DNA of 63,981 nucleotides, filler included, from Pelomyxa schiedti (GCA_020536535.1; 8 parts of 8 records of this genome joined end to end with filler, not necessarily neighbours in it); one strand, 5' to 3'; counted from the whole stretch's first letter, positions 30,463-52,296 are shown. Notes: a model not told the origin generated them from the letters alone. Program-made: numbers and translations.

Positions 30463-32989
30463 TCAGTCTTTGTGGTCTACAGGGGGAGAGTCCTCAAGGA
30501 GTGGTCCTTCTGGAGTGTCATCTTGGTACTGAACGGGTGCAGAGGGAAGTGCCTCGAGGGAGTTGAAGCATGCATAGACCGGCTGATAGACTATTTCCAT
30601 CTCGGGGTCATCCTTTTCCTTAGGTTTGCCTGGGCTTGGACTGGAGCCGTTGTTTACAATGATGGCCCCTGTGATGTTGTTGGTAGTGTCACGGGGCGAA
30701 TGCGTTGGTGCCGGTGTGGTTGTCCCAGTAGTACCGCTTGATGCAGTTGAAGCTGCAGTATCTGGTGTAGAAGGGGATGGCGTGGGTGTGCTGGTGGTTG
30801 GCGTGGGGGACATTGCAGAAATGGGGGCTGAAGGTGTGGTTGAAGTGGTTGATGTGGGTGTTGTGGGTGTTGTGGTGGGGGTAGGTTGGTTGTAGAATGT
30901 GTAGGTCTGACCGGAGAAGGGGTTTGGGCCAAGTAATGATGCTTGGGACGGCTGTGGTAAGGGTTGCTGTGGTTGGGAAGGCTGTGGTTGTGAGAGTGAG
31001 GGGTTTGGATAGAGCTGTGGTTGAGACAGTTGGGGCTGGAGAGGCGACGGTTGGGACTGCGGTGATGACATCTGAGGATAGAGTAGTGGCTGTGACTGCT
31101 GGGGCTGGAGCTGAGGCTGTGATGGCTGTGATGGAAGAGGGGGGTACTGAGGCATGGGAAGCGGTCCTGATGAATTCAACTGCGCCTGGGACGTACGGAA
31201 TTGTGCTTGCTGCATCATCATGGCCATCATCTGTTGCTGTTGCTGTGGGGTCAATGGTTGGCCAGAGGGTGGTTGCATATTTGGAGGCATCTGACCTGGA
31301 CCCGGTGGAAACATTTGACTGGGTGGCATTTGACCTGGTGGAGGCAACTGTCCCGGGGGCATCTGCCCAGGAGGGAACATTTGTCCAGGAGGTGGCATTT
31401 GGCCAGGAGGTACCTGACCAGGTGGAAACATCTGACCGGGTGGAGGCATCTGCCCGGGAGGCAAGGTCATTTGCCCAGGTGGTGGGTATGCTCCTGGCGG
31501 CATTGTACCGTAAGGCGGATACTGTGGATATGGAGGATAAGGATATTGAGGTTGGGCATTTGGATATCCATTTGGCGGGAGTTGTTGGGGATTAGGTTGT
31601 GCTCTTGGGGGATACATGATAACTTGAGAGGAACTCATCTGAGATTGGGAGGGTAATACCATTGGTGCACTTGGAGTAGGAGATGATGCAACAACGTAGA
31701 CCGCTGTTGATGAACCAATAGGTGGAGGGGTAGCAACCACTTTGGGTGCTTTGTCTGATGGAAGGATTAGGGCAAGAAAATAAATTCCTAAAATCATTAC
31801 TGGTTGTAGTTCCAATAACAATCTCATGTCTCGTGAAGAAATCTGAAGACCCCTTCATGATAGCTTTTATGTGCAAACAGTAACCAACAGTTATAAGCTT
31901 CCCCGTATGGCTTGGTATATTAGGAGGGCAAGGGGGGATCTTTATGTTGACCTATTCATAGCTTAGGTAAGGAGCGGGAAGATAGGAAGGAAACATCAAA
32001 ATCTGAGGTTTGATCCTCATGAACAGAGGTCAAGATAGTCTCAGAAGTAAGATTGCCCCACCTAATGAGGGTTTTACCGTGTGCTCCAGTGTATTTGACT
32101 TCTTGTTGTAAGGTGACTATGACTTTACTGACAAGTTTCCTTTGGGTGATCATCAGTAAAACAAGTGTAGGTTTCGGGTTCAAATACTTTGTTCGGTTTT
32201 CCACGGTTACTGTAAGAGGTACGGCCTCTCCAGGGCAAAACGCACTTCTTGGAGATTTCCAATCCAACGTAACTTTCGTTGGATTGATCCAGCCTATTTT
32301 GTTTTCCAATTTGCCAGTCAAAGGTCGCGAAACACTGACATCAGCAACAGGGCACAGAGTGAATGGATGTACAGTCTGATATTGGTCAGTGCATCAAAGA
32401 GTAGACATTTTGAACGACCTTGTAATCACTTTTCCAATTCCTGCGGATTACAGCAACTATGGTATACCTCACAAAACCCAAGGCTCCGTCAAAGGAAGCA
32501 GGAAAATCGTGCCCAGTCGTGTCAAACTTAAAATCGTAAACAACTTCATTATCCGCTTCGACGTTAGCCTATTGGCCAACAGAGAAAAAGACCCTTGTCA
32601 GTAGAGGAAGAGGAAAAAAGACTGCCATACTTCCTTTTTTCCATGTGGAGGAACCCAACAATTCCAGGCAACATCGCAAATTGGTTCTCTCCTGCTCCCG
32701 AGGTATTTATTCACCTCCGAGGGATGATTTGCAGTCAAATTGGTAACCACAACGCCCCTGAAATAAACATGAACGCCCTTAGACTAGAAAAAGATTAGAT
32801 GATGCCCATATGGCCTTCTCCCATAACACTACAGAAGATACAAAGTTGCATTATAATGCACATATGGATGTAGGCACAAACCAAAATGGGCTTATGCAAG
32901 TGCATCACAAGTTGTCCCGTTATTGGAGAGCCAACAAAGTACAAGTTTTGAGGCAGCTTAATATGAAACGCTCGAACGCTTCCCGACAT
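30463..32989 (-). CDS. Arrestin-domain (alpha-arrestin-like) protein with long Pro/Gln/Tyr-rich tail
   Basis: YFVGSPITGQLVMHL, FPASFDG, AFCPGEAVPLTVTVENRT, IPPCPP..GKLITVGYCLHIKA..IVIGT, then a tail of about 400 low-complexity residues. Confidence 0.8.
31290..31500 (-). repeat. Coding tandem repeat PPGQM[F/P] (15-18 nt units)
   Basis: About 10 imperfect PPGQ(M/V/L) units in ORF 30463..31827. Confidence 0.85.
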
Positions 32990-33381: not shown

Positions 33382-36300
33382 CTAGTAGCTTATGAGTTTA
33401 CCCCAGGCGTGGACAGAGGAGTGGTTGGATACAGAGGAAGCGGAGTGCGGGCGAGCTTGTGCCATCTCGGCAATGATTGGGTGCCGGTTCTGGCTGTTGG
33501 GTGGGGGTGGTTTGTACAGAAATGCGTTCACTTTGTAGCCGCCTTTGATCTCCACTTCGCCGCGGGGCTGTAAGGGGAATTCTGACCCAAGAAGTCGAGC
33601 TGTGTTCTCAGTGACTTGCACAGCATCGGGCACGCCACTGCTTTCCATTCTGGAAGCCATATTGACTGACGGACTCTGAGAAAGTTGAGCCGGGCAGAGG
33701 TAAATCAATTTTGACTGCATACCCATATATCATACATGACTTTTGATAAACCAATAACTCCAGCTACAACCGGGCCAGAGTTAATACCGATCCTCACATG
33801 GATATCAGTTTTCTTTGACTTGTTGAAATCATCTAGAGAATATAGCATCTCTGTAGCGAATCGGAGAAGGGTTTGAGCATGATTTTCATCTGGCTCTGGG
33901 CATCCGCAGACACACATGTAGCAATCGCCGATTGTCTACAACATTTTGTTAACAGGAACAATCCCCAGTAAATGCATACTTTAATCTTTTCTACGTGAAA
34001 CGAAAGGGCAATTACATCCCAGATAGACACTATTCCATTTAAGATTTCTACAAGATTTTCAGCATCTATTGTTGTACTCCATTCACTAAACTTGACGATA
34101 TCCGCGAACAATATAGACACCTTGACCAGGAATTTCAGTGCAAATATAAAAAAGTGAAGGATAACCTGGGGGTGCCTGTCAGCTATAAGCAGTGGTTGAG
34201 TTTTGTCTTTTGCCGAAGCTATGGAAGATTTGAGACGTTGCGCAATACTTTTAGGTAGCATTTTCAAGAGCAAATTTTCGTTCTGCTCAAGGAGTTTTTG
34301 GTAACCCCTGTTGGATTAAGTTTTCAAGGTATAATCATGATAGGTACGCCTACCTTATCTCTCTTACATCCCTTACAATCAAAATGGCAACCGTGCCACC
34401 TGATAATTAGATAAGGATCACTTTTTCCTGTTGTTTTTTTTTTTTTACTTTCAAGAGCGGCAGTAGATTTCGAGATGAGAACGGGAAATTGAACTCCTTC
34501 TTTAGAAATTCCAACTGCCTCTGTGTTCTTTTCGCTTACATGTGTCTATGGGTCTGAGAAATAAAAGAAAAGTCTGGAATGGAATACCTTTTGGTTTTCT
34601 AACCAGTCCTTACAAATCAACCGCGCAAGGTGCGAACCTACAATTTCACCAGATGTCCATCTAAAAATGTGAGCCTTTCAAACCAATAAGCAAGAAACAG
34701 TACCCAAACATTGTTTCTGCGGCAGTGTTGAATGTTTGGATGTTTAGAGTCTCGAAATCAACAATAATAACAGCATCTGCAGCTGCTTGAATCAGTCGTT
34801 CCGTTTTAGTTTGTGTGTCCTTCAACATTTTTTGCATTTGCTCTGTCGTGTCCGTTTTTTCCCCTGTCTCCAAGAAATGCTTTATCTGAGGAGTACTCTC
34901 GATCACATCAACGGGTATGAGTAGAAACATCCGGAGGGTGTGGAAATGTTGTTGATGTATTTGCTTCAGGGGAATATGAAGGAGAGCATAGACAATGGCA
35001 GCAAATGGCCATGCGGTTGCAAACAAGGCTGTCAAAATGGATTCGTATCGTTCTATTTGCGAGATGAAGTAATCCAATAGCATTGACTCTAGCTTAATAT
35101 GCCAAGGCCAGAGCCCACGTTCATCAACTCTGTCCATTGTGAGCCACTGAGGGCAAGAAACAGTAGCATCTTTGTCTGGGATATTCTGTTTCATGTTAAG
35201 GAACCAGTGTCTCTATATTGTAGAAGAAAGGTGAACTAACGTTGATAGCTACGGCGGCTGAGATGAAGATGTTATCAATTTCCTTCCCGTGTTAGAGCAG
35301 GTTTATTGAGTGGTTGCATACATCAAGTCCCTCACAGTGGGACAGAACAATATCAGAACAGTCATCATAGAGTAATAGCTCTCTGAGAGCTTTATCTGTT
35401 ATCTCTACGTGCCAGGTTCGTGTTATGCCACTTGAAATGTTTTGTGCTTCGTCATAAGATTGCAGGCCACTTCTGAGGTATTGGTGGAGACCATTCATGT
35501 CGTTAAACGTAATAAAATCTCTATTGATGAGTGAGGCGGCAGCGGTGTGTATTCGCTGAAGTGTGGATCGCTCCAGTATCCTTTCTGAAGTTACATCCTA
35601 GATAAGAATAAAACGAAGTACCTGGAACTTGTTAAGTCCAGTGGACCAGAGAATTGACGAAGAGAAGAAATTGAAAAAGCAGAGATAGCTACAATGAAAA
35701 GAACTAAAACGCAGACACCGACTGTAAATCTGCAACATGTGTTTAAAAAAAAAAAAGTAGGAAATTAGGTAACCTGATGGTAACGTCACTGACGAATTTA
35801 ATCTTAATGGAGTTGACCTGGTGTTTTGACATTTCGGCGGTATTTAGAGAGTCACCAGAAGTGATTGATGAAAAAGAGGCATTGTTCGTAAAGCCTGCAT
35901 TGGAACGTTGGTATCAATACTTGAAAATGCGTAAGTTGTACCTTGTTTTTTTTCTGTGCATGTTTCATATATTTGTCGCACGGTTGTTCGAGAAAGGCAC
36001 AAAAATAATCTCAGTACTTCCAGTCGCTCCTACCAGAGTTTGGTTTCTTTCTTATGAAACTGGTTTTTTACTTACTTTGCGAATCAATATAATCGATCGA
36101 ATGAAAAGACCTGCGACACAGGCAACCACAATCACTACAGTGACTGGGAGCAGAACTGACAATAGTAATCGCGAGGAACGCATTTGAGAGAGAACAGATT
36201 CCTAAATTACAGTCAGATTTTGAGAGTGGTACTTGGGTACTTGCCCTATAGGCCAGAGTAAGTTGTTCAAGAGCAGGTCTGATGACAGAATAACCATTAT

Positions 36301-43023: not shown

Positions 43024-44367
43024 TCACGGGTGAAAGGAGAAATGTTCAGTGACTTCCTTCAGTCGTTCGAGTAACTTGAAAGCAATGACCGGGGCACCAG
43101 AGGACTCCTCAGTCACGTGCATTTCCGTGAGCGATTCGCTCATTTGGAACAGCAGCCCGCCTTCAACAAATGCCTGAGCCGCCGTGCACCCTTCGCGGAA
43201 CCCCGGTGTCCTGATGGGCCTGGCCGCGTCATTGACATCCCACACTTCGTAGGAATCCTCCCCCTTTTCGGTGATTATGCATAACTGTGACTGGCTGAGA
43301 AGTGACAGTGACCTAGAGTCATCGTCTCCAACTCCAATCATATGGGATTGGATCGGCTGAATTTTTCCTGTTGCTTCCTCAATGCTGATGGCAAAGTCAG
43401 CACCCTCTGACATCACAATAATGGAGCGAGAACCCCCGGTTCTTGGATTGGACAATACACAGTGGTCACCCCAGAGAATTGGGTCAAGGTTGGGAAGGCA
43501 CAGGCCAGCACATAGAGGAACAGTTAGGCTCAGAACTGCAAGAGTTTTGGTGCGAGTGGTTTGCATCAGGTCCACAAGAAGAAACTCACAATAGCTGGAA
43601 GAGAAAAGGCGATTTCCGAAGCAAAGCAAGAGGTGGTTTTCGTTGTAGCTGCAAAGTGACAGCTGGAAGTGCTTCTTCCTGCTGCTAACACTCAGTGGCA
43701 CAACGGTTGTCTGCCGTTCAAGGGAAGTTGAACCCATTGGGTACAGCTTTGGCAGCTCGATTATAAGGAGTTTCTTTCTTGAAGACCGGTCACAGCAAAC
43801 AAACCACTTAGAGTTCAAGCAGGTAGTCCAGGAGTGTTTCTTCTTTGTCCAGAAAGGCACCCTTTGGCCTGTCACAACGTCCTGCAGAAAGCACAGTGGG
43901 CCTCTTTGCACCATCAAGTAATGCTGAGTAGCCCCCATCAATGCCTCAGTGGCCCTGGCAACCCACCACTTCATTTTATGTGTAAGTGTCAGCAGTAGTG
44001 GTGACACACCAAAAGTCATCATAACCACATGACAGCCAGCGGTGTAGAACTTGATGCAGTAGAACCTGGAATGTCCCATAATCCAATTCCGCAGCACCCT
44101 CAGCACCAACGTGCTGTCAAACTCCCCTCCAGCGCCGTCTCCACATCCTCCCATAATCGCCAAAATAGGGACCAACAGTGCGCAGCAGGCACCACAGCGC
44201 GGGTGGGTGCCAGCAGCCAACACCCCCACCTGCTCCCTGGCCGTGAGACACGGGGATGACTGAGAATTATGGGTAACGGAACCTCCCTCGTGCAGTGCAT
44301 CTGAGGGGGGTTCTACAACAACGACTTTGCCAAAACGTCGTTGTTGTCTGCTATCGCTGGTTGACAT
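43024..44367 (-). CDS. Lineage-specific expanded family protein (intronless)
   Basis: AREQVGVLAAGTHPRCG, FGVSPLLL, CLNSKWFV, YEVWDVND, VEGGLLFQ, VTEESSGAPVIAF. Confidence 0.75.
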   Translation of the reverse strand: MSTSDSRQQRRFGKVVVVEPPSDALHEGGSVTHNSQSSPCLTAREQVGVLAAGTHPRCGACCALLVPILAIMGGCGDGAGGEFDSTLVLRVLRNWIMGHSRFYCIKFYTAGCHVVMMTFGVSPLLLTLTHKMKWWVARATEALMGATQHYLMVQRGPLCFLQDVVTGQRVPFWTKKKHSWTTCLNSKWFVCCDRSSRKKLLIIELPKLYPMGSTSLERQTTVVPLSVSSRKKHFQLSLCSYNENHLLLCFGNRLFSSSYCEFLLVDLMQTTRTKTLAVLSLTVPLCAGLCLPNLDPILWGDHCVLSNPRTGGSRSIIVMSEGADFAISIEEATGKIQPIQSHMIGVGDDDSRSLSLLSQSQLCIITEKGEDSYEVWDVNDAARPIRTPGFREGCTAAQAFVEGGLLFQMSESLTEMHVTEESSGAPVIAFKLLERLKEVTEHFSFHP

Positions 44368-46756: not shown

Positions 46757-46864
46757 TAAAAAGAATAAAAAATTGGCCTGTAAGTTTTTTTTCTTCTTTG
46801 TGACATAGTCCTTTTGAGGTGTGGGTGTAGCAGTGCCCCAAAGGAAAAAGAATCAAACGATTCT

Positions 46865-49800
46865 TTAACATCCTAGAACCATCTTTTGGTAGTTGGGAAG
46901 GTTGGTTGTGGCAACTGAAATGAGGAGAACATACCTTGACTTGTGCTGGGGTGTACTGACACAGGAGTGAGACGTCGGGGTAGCCAGATGAAGGCGTTGA
47001 CAGTGTGTTATAGAGGGTAGTGTAGTGTTGAACTAGTATGCTACCTATTCTTTCTCTGGCTGCGATTCTGTAGAATTTTAGAGGTGTAAGTCAGCTATGC
47101 GGAGGACGCCACCTCAATTCACTGCTTATAATTCGCTCCAGTACAGGCAACATCACGGCATCGTGCAAAACACCCTCGAATAGGAGGATGGCTCCGTGAA
47201 CTGTATCAAAGTCCATTCCAGGCCACTCACAAAGCAAAGATGGTGTGGTAGTGGAGGTTTTTGATTGTGTGGGCGCACTTGATTCTACTGTTGGAGATGA
47301 CGTGGGAGCTGGTTGTGTTGGAGATGGGGATAGAACCGGGGATGTGGGTGCGGATGCGGATGTGTGATTGTCTCCAGTTGTTGTGGTTTGTGTACTGTCT
47401 GATTGTGTTGAGGAAGTGGACTGTGCTAAGTCAGGTTGTAACTTCTGAACGTGACTGTGATAGCGGGAAATGGTAGAGACAAGGGATAGAATTCCACAGT
47501 CCGATAAAATTCCCAGAGACTGAAGGATATTAACTTTTCGAAAATGAATTTACAAAGAAATTTATGTAATTGTGCCAGAAGAGATAGAAACTTGTAGGTG
47601 AACAATGGAGTCCATGTTAGCATCTATTTGAGCTTGGAGCATCTCTAAGGAGACACTCCATACGTCCTGATGCTTTGTAGACATGACGGCAGTCTAGGGA
47701 CAATTAAACCTAACCAAATGAGAGTACACAAGTACCTGAATACTAAAAGCACAATTGATAACATAAACAGATACACTGCTTTCATCGAATTTAGATAAGG
47801 CCGCACTCATTGTGCAAACCTTGAAGTTTCTTGGGGTAAGAAAAGAATCATAAGGGCAGTGGAAAAACCTTCAATAACGGTTGAATAAACGAATCTAGAA
47901 GTGGGGCTATCTCGAGTTGTTGTGTGGAGGACATGGTGAGAGAGCTGTTGAATGACTTGATCAATTCACTCTGTAACACTGGCTCAGGTTCACTGGAGGA
48001 AAATCGCTTATACCAACAATGAAATTAACTCTCGTATGACAAGAGGTGGGACCAAGTCCAAAGGGGGGGACTTGTGGGAATTGTAAATAAAGTCAATTTA
48101 GAGCAGCGAAACAAACCGGTGGAGACCCAAGGACTTTATCCATCAAGTTGCTTATCGAAGTTGTGAACTTGTTCAACGTGTCCACTTGGCATCTGGTTTG
48201 TTTTACATAAAAGAAATAGGGCAGTGTTGGGTTACTGATGCAGTACTGCAATGAAATGAGATTCTGGAGAGTGAAGGAGAGTGGAAATTTTATTGCAATA
48301 GAAGTCAATCAAGTTCGCCATCCGGAAAATTACGACATTTCCAGCTTGGTGCTCAATTGCTTGCTCTAGCCGCACCTAAGATTCAAGTCACTCTTGTTGG
48401 ATGTGTTCACAAGAGCTCTTACTTTAAATTGCATTACTACGTTTTCCATTATTGCCTCAATAGATTTGTCACATAATTTCTGGAGTTCCACTTTTTTTGG
48501 AATTGAATTTGCGTAAAGGTTAAAGAAAACAGACCTGAAAGAGTAGAATAGTCTGTTACATTGTGTTCAGTTTCTGCCCCAGGTGGAGTGAGAAGTGAGC
48601 AAATGAGCTCATATTCGCTAGCGATTGCTTGATGCAGCCACCCTAGCATATCTCCAACGTACCTTGGATAATAAGAAGACTTTTGGTTGAAAGGAAAATA
48701 CCTGAGAGGATCATGTGCATTTATTTCAATTGGCTTCGTACTTCCAGTACCAACAGTCAATGCAACATGGAATGACTTAAGAATAGCACGGTTCCTGTAA
48801 GTCAAAGATAAATCATAAGGTACCCCTAGCTTCTCAACCTTTGGGATGAAATATCTGACAAACAGCCCCTTTTGAATGTGAGCCACAAAAAGAATATATA
48901 AAAGGGTTAACTACTCCAGCATCGCTGGGTCCGTCAATTCATGTAGTGACTCCCGAAATACAGGATCATATGTGGGGCTCTCCAGTAAAAACGCCTAAGT
49001 GGTATGACTAACATATTGGCCAAACAGTAACTAACTTGAGAGTGTGATCGTATCCACTTGGCTATGGTCATGTTTGCTGATGAAATATGCCTGTACATCA
49101 TTTCTGCAATTTCGATTCTTGATGCTAATTAATTAATACAAAGTTTCTCAGAGCTTACCCAAGAAGTCTCTTTTCATGGAATTTTAATAGCACCTTTGAG
49201 TCATTGCTAATTTGCTTGACATGGCGTAATCCTTCAAAGAATCTGGGGCTTGGCTCTGACTTGTTTTGTCAGACAACTATTGCAAAAAAGGCACATACAC
49301 GCAAAGCAGCCAAAGTTTCTTGTGAAAGTTTACATTCCACTAAGAATGCTTCCAAAATAGAACTGCAACCTTCATAATAGACTCTGAAAAAGGAAGTTTT
49401 AGGAAAACATTGCGCTTTAACAGTGGTACTTGTGCATCCTCAACGAGTTGGCGTTTGACAGAAGTTGCGCCGAAAGTTGTTGTGACTGATTCAATGAATT
49501 TACAACAGACGAAGTATCTTTCCTCAAAGCCACGACATCCGTCCTTACAGATTCCACCAGCTTGGGTGTGGGTGTGTATGTGTGAGATTCGGACGAACTT
49601 CACATTGACGGTTGTAGTGCCCACAACTCCCGAAACATAAAAGAATACAAAACAAAACCAAACAAAACCAAACCAACGAACGAACGAACCTGAAGCAGAG
49701 ACTCATAGCTGGTCAGAAAATCGCGCAGATTGTCCAGCTCCCTGCGCTCCACCAGGCTCCTCAGCTCCCTGCGGTTGGACAGGGAGTTGGACGTGTATCC

Positions 49801-49920
49801 CATCTCCCAAACGCCGTTCAGCATGGACCCCACGTCGGCGACGGACCCGGGGCCGTGCTGCGACGGCGCGATGTCCGTCGACACAACCTTGGCGATTTTC
49901 TTGGACAGTGTGGGATTCAT
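46865..49920 (-). CDS. COG6: Conserved oligomeric Golgi complex subunit 6 (multi-exon)
   Basis: LSKKIAKVV..NSLSNRRELRSLVERR; LTVGTGSTKPIEINAHDPLR / YVGDMLGWLHQAIASEYE; ends YTPAQVK/MVLGC*. Confidence 0.92.
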
Positions 49921-50305: not shown

Positions 50306-50930
50306 TGTGCGCTTATAAGCCCAGGTTCTTCTCATGAATTCCGAGTATCCAGTGGACCCACAGCGCAGCATCACGTGTCATTGAATTCCAGAAGTTGTCC
50401 GACTTCTGTGGGTCGCTCAGGCCCGACACTGTGATTCCCTTTTTCGGGAAGTCATCACTTTCACATCTCTCTCAATGCCTTCACTGAGGGAGTTGTTGGT
50501 GGATTGATATATGAATGACCTGCGAGAGTGACAAGTATCATCTCCAGAGAAGGAGTTAAAACACTATAGTGTTTGATATGTGGTTCTGAATTGCTTGAGC
50601 CGGTGAGGTTTATTGCAAGACGAAGGAGAGAGGTTACCTTTCCTTTGCAATTTGCTTGGTGGCAGCAACGTGACCAATGTCGGCCTAAATACATCGTGTC
50701 TTGGAAGTAGTGTAAGTGAAGCCAGAAAACGGTGAGTTGTGAAACACCACCCAAAAGTGTTTATGAAGAGGCTCATTGTTACAATTAATATAGCATATGC
50801 CTAGACAGCGTATACATAAGGAGAGTTTGTCACGTATGCCGCACAAAACTAAGGAGTAGATGCAGTTGCAATAGGTACCGAGAATGACAACCGATGAGCC
50901 CACAACAACATTTTCTACGGTGTGCACCGA
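50306..50930 (-). CDS. Possible small spliced hypothetical gene
   Basis: Short minus-strand open segments bounded by GT/AG (..LHKHFW / ADIGHVAATKQIAKER / ..). Exon structure not resolved. Confidence 0.25.
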
Positions 50931-51270
50931 AGTGATTCACACTCGAATCAGATCTTCCACATACAAAAAGCCAACAGGTTGTCGCGCTCCGTACGTAGAA
51001 ATCACACACCGTCAATACACTAACCGCTCGTCCAAAAAAAAAGAGTTTCAACTGTGTAAAGGGAAAAGTCGAAAGAAAAACTAAAACTTCCCCTTTTTAA
51101 ACGCCTGGCGCGGTTACGGTGGCTAACACCGTGTGTGGCGTGTAGAATAGGATTTCGTCTCGCGTCCTCCAAGAAAATGCCGTGCGGAGTTCTCTACACA
51201 TATGATAAGCAACCTAAACAACGCCACAATCACGTTTAACCTACCATCTCCTGTTTTTCCGCTTCCATTT

Positions 51271-52296
51271 CTGTTGTTATTCCCAGCCATCAGTGAAGCG
51301 GCACGGGAACGCATACAACAACAACCACAGCAGTGACTCCTGCATTGCACAAGAAGCTGTTGTTATTCCCAGCCATCAGTGAAGCGGCACGGGAAACAAC
51401 AACAACTCCCTGGTGCAGACTCCAACATCTAGACTCTCCCAGCTTTCCACCAGAATTGTGTGACCTTGTGAGTGGTGCACTGTGGCGTTTTCCTCCCAGC
51501 CATCAGTTAAGCGGCACGGGAGAACACGCCAAAACAGCACACCATCACTCAGCACAACAACTCCAGTTTCCGCCAAGAGAGGTTGATATTGGAGAGCAGG
51601 GATGGGATGACGCCACAGAGCCGAATCAACAGCGGAAATATATAAGAGCTCTCCAAATCATCAATCCCAGTGACTAGCAGTAATATTGGTGGTATCTCAG
51701 CCAGCGAAGCCAAGCCTTCAAGTAGTATCTCACAGTGGTGTGCAATGAAACTATTCTACTATTCTCCCAATAATCGAATGTAGTAAATTAGGTTATAAAG
51801 AGGTAAGACCAATACCGCAAACCCAAGAGATGAAGCAGCCACAGCCAGCAGATGAAGTGACTTGATATTGAGTTCACTTGTTGCAGTTGAAGTTGCTCTC
51901 AGCCATCAGTTAAGCGGCACGAGAACGCTACCAGCCATCAGTTAAGCGGCACGGTAACGCATACAACAACAACCACAGCAGTGACTTCACTTGTTGCAGT
52001 TGAAGTTGCTCTCAGCCATCAGTTAAGCGGCACGAGAACGTTCCCAGCCATCAGTTAAGCGGCACGGGAACGCATACAACAACAACCACAGCAGTGACTC
52101 CTGCATTGCACAAGAAGCTGTTGTTATTCCCAGCCATCAGTGAAGCGGCACGGGAAACAACAACAACTCCCTGGTGCAGACTCCAACATCTAGACTCTCC
52201 CAGCTTTCCACCAGAATTGTGTGACCTTGTGAGTGGTGCACTGTGGCGTTTTCCTCCCAGCCATCAGTTAAGCGGCACGGGAGAACACGCCAAAAC
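51271..52296 (-). repeat. Array of 9 structured hairpin repeats (core GTGCCGCTTMACTGATGGCT on the minus strand) inside an apparent 761-bp higher-order repeat; candidate ncRNA
   Basis: Plus-strand core AGCCATCAGT(T/G)AAGCGGCAC starts at 51285, 51371, 51498, 51901, 51933, 52014, 52046, 52132 and 52259. 51281-51535 recurs at 52042-52296. Most spacings are not multiples of 3. Confidence 0.9.

Follow-up and report, generated by a model that had tools for sequence, protein, structure and literature searches.

A tandem repeat at the end of a nuclear contig of Pelomyxa schiedti contains, on its minus strand, hairpins that share an invariant apex and whose outer stems differ in sequence with pairing maintained. 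We analysed a window of 63,981 nucleotides, meaning the whole stretch of DNA, filler included, in which 8 parts of 8 records of the genome (GCA_020536535.1) are joined end to end; the array closes a 26.6-kb piece of it. This locus of a eukaryote is a non-coding tandem repeat that is transcribed and spliced. The explanation that we tentatively prefer, and would rate a little short of even, is a non-coding locus of repeat origin, with putative docking or processing hairpins for one factor encoded repeatedly on its G/U-rich strand. The anatomy, covariation and strand asymmetry of the repeat and its transcription and splicing are established, and from these we infer a minus-strand RNA, an apex-binding factor and a function.

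The original prediction described nine hairpins with a shared core, and this description was borne out. The 20-nt core GTGCCGCTTMACTGATGGCT is present in nine exact copies on the minus strand, where none is expected in 100 shuffles, at spacings of 86, 127, 403, 32, 81, 32, 86 and 127 nt. Its sole variable base is an A/C in the loop, and the outer stems that had been quoted, together with the longer extensions of two of the hairpins (B and C below), are all present. In minus-strand orientation, every copy opens with a 5' arm of variable sequence, continues with a G and a bulged U, and ends in the complementary 3' arm. Between the two lie a 4-bp helix (GCCG/UGGC) with a G·U closing pair and a 9-nt loop, CUUAACUGA or CUUCACUGA. 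The invariant apex measures 26 nt and comprises the 9-nt loop, the 4-bp helix closed by G·U, the bulged U and a further G·U.

The nine copies sit in nested duplications. Positions 51280-51535 match 52041-52296 with a single mismatch, the loop A/C, which gives a period of 761 nt; the contig end falls within the repeat, and the array in the window consists of one full 761-nt unit and a partial second. A 113-nt tandem pair (51869-51981 and 51982-52094) differs at four sites, and a sub-repeat period of 32 nt is also visible inside the 761-nt unit. Because of the 761-nt and 113-nt duplications the copies represent five independent hairpins, A, B, C, D and E, so that all nine predicted copies were found but they do not count as nine independent cases. 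Each unit has a hairpin-rich part with six hairpins, followed by a 307-nt spacer (Table 1). Like a satellite, the repeat has head-to-tail units, internal sub-repeats (113-nt and 32-nt) and many genomic copies. The copy at the array edge, A1, is a chimera with the loop variant and one arm of B and the other arm of A, and the edge therefore looks as if two hairpin cores had recombined. A covariance model of the copies, a check proposed with the original prediction, recovers the nine cores but detects no additional copy in positions 25662-52296 (26.6 kb); a 14-bit match at 44280 is an unrelated hairpin. The remainder of the 26.6-kb piece contains nothing resembling the 761-nt unit.

Table 1. Features of the hairpin array, with positions counted from the first letter of the window.
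Feature	Position	Strand	Remarks
Whole array to contig end	51271..52296	minus	one full 761-nt unit and part of a second
Core copies	51285, 51371, 51498, 51901, 51933, 52014, 52046, 52132, 52259	minus	
Hairpin A1	51275..51314	minus	array edge; 5' arm of A, loop C and 3' arm of B; 61.1 bits
Hairpin B1	51344..51417	minus	31-pair stem, 4 G·U outside core; loop variant C
Hairpin C1	51455..51561	minus	longest stem, 43 pairs, 5 G·U outside core
Spacer, 307 nt	51562..51868	strandless	contains plus-strand TATA-like box and intron
Intron, 46 nt	51738..51783	plus	GT..AG; skipped in X3, X4 and X5 RNA contigs, kept in DNA contigs
Hairpin D1	51893..51928	minus	12 pairs; abuts E
Hairpin E	51923..51962	minus	14 pairs; paralogue of A
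Hairpin D2	52006..52041	minus	copy of D1 via 113-nt tandem duplication
Hairpin A2	52036..52075	minus	14 pairs; 63.8 bits
Hairpin B2	52105..52178	minus	identical to B1 at 761-nt offset
Hairpin C2	52216..52296	minus	identical to C1 at 761-nt offset; 5' arm lost at contig end

The compensatory change claimed for the stems is present. In an alignment of seven hairpins 90% of the cells are paired, compared with 32-53% when the partners are slid, and six of the 13 pairs have changed on both sides; the observed values were reached by 0-2 of 500 column shuffles, statistics that are thin in that they draw on five independent hairpins of related sequence at one locus. The young 113-nt duplication is the cleanest single test of covariation. 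Three of the four differences between its copies fall in the A/E stem and all of them keep minus-strand pairing: A and E are separated by a double change, from C-G to A-U, and by a single one that turns U-A into U·G. When four substitutions were placed at random in a Monte Carlo simulation, such an outcome had p ~0.013-0.016. The expressed variant of the repeat differs from the window copy at one position in about 253 nt of the hairpin block, a change of G·U to A-U, and at 7 positions in 175 nt of the spacer.

The original prediction had also noted that the non-Watson-Crick pairs of four core-proximal stems are all G·U on the minus strand and had taken this to indicate a folded minus strand, which RNA folding parameters likewise favour. 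In minimum-energy folds of the five distinct hairpins on the minus strand, 13 pairs beyond the core are G·U and A·C oppositions are absent, and the same helix on the plus strand has 70% of its cells paired. Stems are 31 pairs long in B and 43 in C, and 12-14 in A, D and E. Folded as RNA, one unit has an energy of -302.7 kcal/mol on the minus strand (z -8.1 relative to shuffles) and -220.8 on the plus strand (z -2.3). For the hairpin block RNA parameters give z -6.8 on the minus strand versus -3.5 on the plus strand, whereas DNA parameters give nearly symmetric values of -57.0 (z -4.25) and -51.1 (z -3.73), respectively. Since the asymmetry is seen with RNA energies and is nearly gone with DNA energies, the strand preference is energetically meaningful for RNA alone. 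The 307-nt spacer is unstructured, with z +0.6 on each strand, and in a sliding-window scan of the 26.6-kb piece the top minus-strand score falls on the array. As far as sequence patterns can tell, the minus strand appears to have been kept foldable as RNA by sequence evolution.

Copy number and expression were assessed in five public runs from two studies, two of which are single-cell RNA libraries labelled "protist metagenome". These were examined as contigs, in which read strand, transcript ends and small RNAs are invisible and an intron serves as the strand cue. Run X1 behaves as genomic DNA, having contigs of up to 91 kb in which the introns of the neighbouring COG6 gene are retained. Its summed depth over 51325-52112 is 330-490, compared to 8-11 in flanking unique DNA (about 30-60x), a ratio that indicates dozens of genomic copies of the unit; the commonest genomic variant is ~5% divergent from the window copy in the spacer. 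In RNA run X4 the depth is ~129 over 51309-52099 and 3-10 over COG6, and expression of the repeat per copy is similar to that of a housekeeping gene. The intergenic stretch between COG6 and the repeat has zero RNA depth.

The 46 nt at 51738-51783 are skipped in contigs of X3 and X4, which derive from one sample, and of X5, from the second study. The skipped segment has GT..AG borders in plus-strand orientation and a 3' part rich in pyrimidines, and falls in the length class of the neighbouring introns. A DNA contig of the same sequence variant retains these 46 nt, and the skip is therefore splicing and not a deletion variant; unspliced RNA at the intron accounts for at most ~30% of the signal, as estimated from depth bins. 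The GT..AG orientation, the only strand-informative evidence on expression, makes the detected RNA plus-sense. A lone TATA-like box, TATATAAG, is found on the plus strand at 51639-51646, ~92 nt upstream of the donor site, and judging by such sequence signals each repeat copy may be transcribed separately, in the plus sense. The spliced plus-strand RNA contains no ATG-started frame of at least 40 codons. No RNA-specific base differences are listed for the RNA contigs at the positions that would be A·C on the plus strand, and thus there is no sign of editing that restores plus-strand pairing. One RNA contig of X4 leaves the spacer at 51834 and runs into 138 nt of unrelated sequence with no splice consensus at the break, which may be the far edge of another array copy. 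On the minus-strand transcription that the original prediction had put forward for checking, the outcome is that the locus is expressed and spliced and that the strand-informative intron is plus-sense, opposite to the folded strand. The foldable strand (minus) and the accumulating spliced RNA (plus) are in conflict. Single-cell libraries are usually poly(A)-primed, so a non-polyadenylated or rapidly processed minus-strand RNA would go undetected.

The 26.6-kb piece is eukaryotic nuclear DNA, with COG6, an MFS transporter, a cyclase and GT..AG introns of 43-78 nt. The MFS transporter matches an ORF on the plus strand at 44.5-46.7 kb, and leucine-rich repeats also occur in the piece. COG6 lies on the minus strand at 46800-49920 (COG6_C, E 5e-20; COG6_N weak) and has six introns of 43-72 nt in RNA contigs, all GT..AG on the minus strand, with 5' splice sites that are poorly conserved past the GT. 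Fragments of adenylate/guanylate cyclase catalytic and PAS domains at 33833-35194 and 31956-32321 on the minus strand are probably exons of one gene, and an arrestin C-terminal domain is located near them. A 454-aa ORF at 30463-31827, also minus, has an extreme P/Q/T content and repeated PPGQM motifs, matches no Pfam family and sits in the strongest GC-skew segment of the piece. We scanned all ORFs of at least 120 aa, except four that are antisense to or overlap annotated genes, plus smaller ones beside the array; no transposase, Rep, Y1, HUH, integrase, helicase or reverse transcriptase domain was found in these ORFs of the 26.6-kb piece.

Between COG6 and the array, the segment 50340-50536 (sharpest at about 50388-50465) has a summed DNA depth of ~2,100, with single sites up to ~3,600 and flanks of 8-11, and is found in RNA contigs with several differing flanks. 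Its plus strand translates into a leucine-rich-repeat-like peptide, it includes a 9-bp inverted repeat, GACCCACAG / CTGTGGGTC, and it may derive from a very large family of LRR genes, as one of their repeat units, and not from a transposon. At 50520-50849 minus-strand splicing is seen in an RNA contig of a paralogous copy (~92% identical): it lacks a 44-nt GT..AG intron (50594-50637) and also skips 78 nt whose ends are ill-defined. Pfam gives no match for a 97-aa ORF at 50461-50754, and the stretch 50537-51324 has a DNA depth ~2-6x that of the flanks.

Searches of family collections agree with the statement in the original prediction that the array matches no recognised family. Rfam 15 at gathering thresholds gives no match in 25662-52296, its permissive mode gives only chance-level matches (E 0.45-4.5), and ARAGORN finds no tRNA or tmRNA gene. 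The exact core has no match in viral contigs, one match in a metagenome collection (L001), within a bacterial contig whose flanks lack hairpin arms, and one single-copy match in a bacterial genome collection (L002), in a metagenome-assembled genome; these two single-copy matches are near the chance rate for a 20-mer in collections so large and were taken as chance.

Individual classes were also compared, with IRE, K-turn, hammerhead, pol III terminator and Helitron or attC ends read by eye against consensus motifs. A microRNA precursor cluster would have a stem of at least ~20 bp in every hairpin, and the stems of A, D and E have 12-14 bp; the hairpins favour the minus strand while the RNA seen in contigs is spliced and plus-strand. 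Integron attC sites have RYYYAAC / GTTRRRY, and the arms here are GTTYYY / RRRAAC, with eukaryotic neighbours and no integrase. REP/BIME elements do not fit the eukaryotic context, and no Y1_Tnp match was found in the scanned ORFs. For a Helitron terminus there is no CTRR after the hairpins, no A|TC junction at 51271 and no Rep/Hel domain. The DUSE of dictyostelid Class I RNAs (CCCAYAA) does not occur in 50906-52296, and the conserved element here is the apex and not a stem-side motif. With respect to hammerhead and other small self-cleaving ribozymes, the loop CUGAUGG lacks the final A of CUGAUGA and none was found to E 5. The only box C/D snoRNA match is to GlsR6, in the spacer, at 16.8 bits versus a 75-bit threshold (E 0.86). 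An IRE-type loop, CAGUGN, is present in the C variant on the plus strand only and with the bulge on the wrong side; position 1b of a K-turn is A or C, not G; and no T-run suited to a pol III terminator follows the hairpins, the sole T4 lying within the arm of C.

We propose that the six hairpins of a unit would be descendants of one ancestral hairpin, multiplied by internal duplication with the 32-nt period and amplified afterwards as a 761-nt higher-order repeat. The outer stems would have diverged with pairing maintained as the apex stayed invariant. The hairpins would act as RNA read off the G/U-rich minus strand, and the 26-nt apex may be a recognition module for one sequence- and shape-specific factor, for which an RNA-binding protein is one candidate and an enzyme of the RNase III type, measuring from the loop, another. 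The array would present many such sites per minus-strand molecule, and the divergent stems would stop neighbouring modules from mispairing, so that each could fold independently. In this scheme the spliced RNA from the plus strand, which is non-coding, would serve as antisense partner or arise from the locus as a product of its own. That the strand-informative RNA is plus-sense and spliced counts against reading the array as minus-strand RNA modules. It is possible, though in our view doubtful, that the array represents an undescribed protist family of structured RNAs, in which dozens to hundreds of invariant-loop, bulged-U hairpins, carried on the minus strand antisense to a spliced non-coding RNA, serve one dedicated factor as a multivalent trap or as a signal for processing.

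The main alternative, which we consider unlikely though with appreciable weight, is a dyad-symmetric satellite. It holds that the hairpins are DNA-level quasi-palindromes, either foldback or MITE-like relics or dyads of the kind found in centromeric or subtelomeric satellites, prone to form cruciforms or to bind proteins, with the plus-strand lncRNA incidental, arm-to-arm correction and concerted evolution maintaining the arms, and mutation bias supplying the G·U excess. Arm-to-arm correction of DNA quasi-palindromes could mimic compensatory change, and a mutation process with strand bias might, in principle, account for the surplus of G·U. The high-copy tandem higher-order repeat at a contig end fits such a satellite, as do the array edge recombinant between two hairpin cores and the roughly equal folding of the strands as DNA; the documented RNA is plus-strand only, and the expression data are best explained in this way. 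Centromeric satellites are known to have dyad symmetries (PMC5889037). However, 13 G·U pairs against no A·C oppositions are unexpected under symmetric decay of palindromes, and transcription-linked deamination on the plus (coding) strand would leave G·U pairs there and not on the minus strand. Only for a minus-strand RNA is the change from U-A to U·G in the young 113-nt duplicate neutral, and the imperfect apex with its two G·U pairs and bulge is invariant, yet palindrome correction should perfect the apex. A further alternative, which we regard as quite improbable, is that transcription of both strands feeds RNA silencing, with the B and C stems or sense-antisense duplexes diced and the repeat's own plus-strand transcript or chromatin as the target. 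B (31 bp) and C (43 bp) have precursor-like stems, their only near-matches in Rfam are microRNA precursor models at chance level (E 0.45-2.8), and any minus-strand product would find a perfectly complementary partner in the existing plus-strand transcript; against these stand a conserved apex instead of a conserved stem arm, the opposite of microRNA families, strand-informative RNA of plus sense only, and the 12-14 bp stems of A, D and E, which are too short for Dicer-type processing.

The original prediction had also offered a REP- or attC-like ssDNA hairpin substrate of a HUH or tyrosine enzyme, and we considered Helitron-type substrates along with it. The strand-specific imperfect hairpins with an extrahelical base are similar to such substrates in outline, but we now hold this to be very unlikely: the locus is in a eukaryotic nucleus with spliceosomal introns, no gene for such an enzyme (Rep, Y1, integrase or helicase domain) was found in the scanned ORFs of the 26.6 kb, the GTTYYY / RRRAAC arms differ from attC core sites, and the hairpins are not followed by CTRR. 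In addition G·T adds almost nothing with DNA parameters, with which the strand preference is almost lost, and the exact core has no bacterial, viral or metagenome match except the two single chance ones. The setting is a higher-order tandem repeat of a eukaryote and not a bacterial-style REP or attC one. We hold a protein-coding repeat, or an artefact of assembly, to be extremely unlikely. On the plus strand an open frame of 114-126 aa that lacks a Met spans three hairpins, and the C variant of the loop eliminates a TAA in it; however, the spacings argue against a coding repeat, as the original prediction had held, and they are not multiples of three. The core is read in three frames, and on the spliced RNA of the plus strand no frame of at least 40 codons starts with ATG. 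Neither Pfam nor a homologue search gave a match for the 114-aa frame, and an open frame is expected on a T-poor strand (p ~0.08, an estimate). An artefact is suggested by the 256-nt duplicate at the contig end, which matches except for the loop A/C, but the repeat is present at high depth in independent DNA and RNA runs. Taken together, the structural inference of the original prediction is supported and its ssDNA-enzyme option is unlikely.

If the hairpins act as RNA, as in the docking or processing array that we prefer, they would constitute a new structured-RNA family in a poorly studied eukaryotic lineage, with a clear recognition element, open to testing, made up of the loop, the bulge and two wobble pairs, and a natural multivalent hairpin array with deliberately divergent stems. 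If they are DNA-level dyads only, the locus would be an ordinary transcribed satellite with an unusual internal architecture. The conflict between the foldable strand and the spliced strand poses a concrete question about sense-antisense use of satellite repeats.

Tandem microRNA clusters in spliced non-coding host genes include C19MC and mir-430, and the present locus is likewise a hairpin array in a repeated, spliced, non-coding transcription unit. MicroRNA families differ in conserving a stem arm and not the loop, three of the five hairpins here are too short, and the best-folding strand is opposite to the spliced host RNA. Substrates of yeast Rnt1p have a conserved tetraloop, and a loop can serve as a ruler for RNase III cleavage. 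REP/BIME and attC elements share with the array strand-specific imperfect hairpins, extrahelical bases and an arrayed arrangement, but they are prokaryotic ssDNA structures beside RAYT or IntI genes, whereas this locus is eukaryotic with no such enzyme nearby, mismatches the core sites and has an asymmetry specific to RNA. Centromeric satellites are often transcribed. Like the array, they are high-copy tandem repeats with short dyad symmetries (PMC5889037); those dyads are <10 bp and come without an invariant loop, a compensatory pattern or a strand bias.

Dictyostelid Class I RNAs combine a compensatory short stem with a conserved unpaired motif and are abundant, with many genes per genome (PMC7919456). 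They are separate ~60-nt genes with a DUSE ~60 nt upstream, and have a 6-bp terminal stem and an 11-nt motif beside the 5' stem, the remainder being variable (PMC7919456). The array resembles them in its compensated stem and conserved motif and differs in that it has no DUSE, its whole apex is conserved and its modules are in tandem within a 761-nt repeat. By analogy, the array may work most like the hairpin modules of repeat-derived lncRNAs, such as the Xist A-repeats, which present a ~26-nt conserved module in 7.5-8.5 copies with non-conserved linkers, forming a multivalent platform for proteins (PMC6917512). These repeats, and likewise roX-box stem-loops, are paralleled here by a 26-nt apex that occurs six times per unit in variable surroundings. 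There is no sequence relation to the Xist A-repeats, and the present array is a genomic tandem repeat of dozens of units in which the stems co-vary, the detected RNA comes from the opposite strand and the factor is a putative one.
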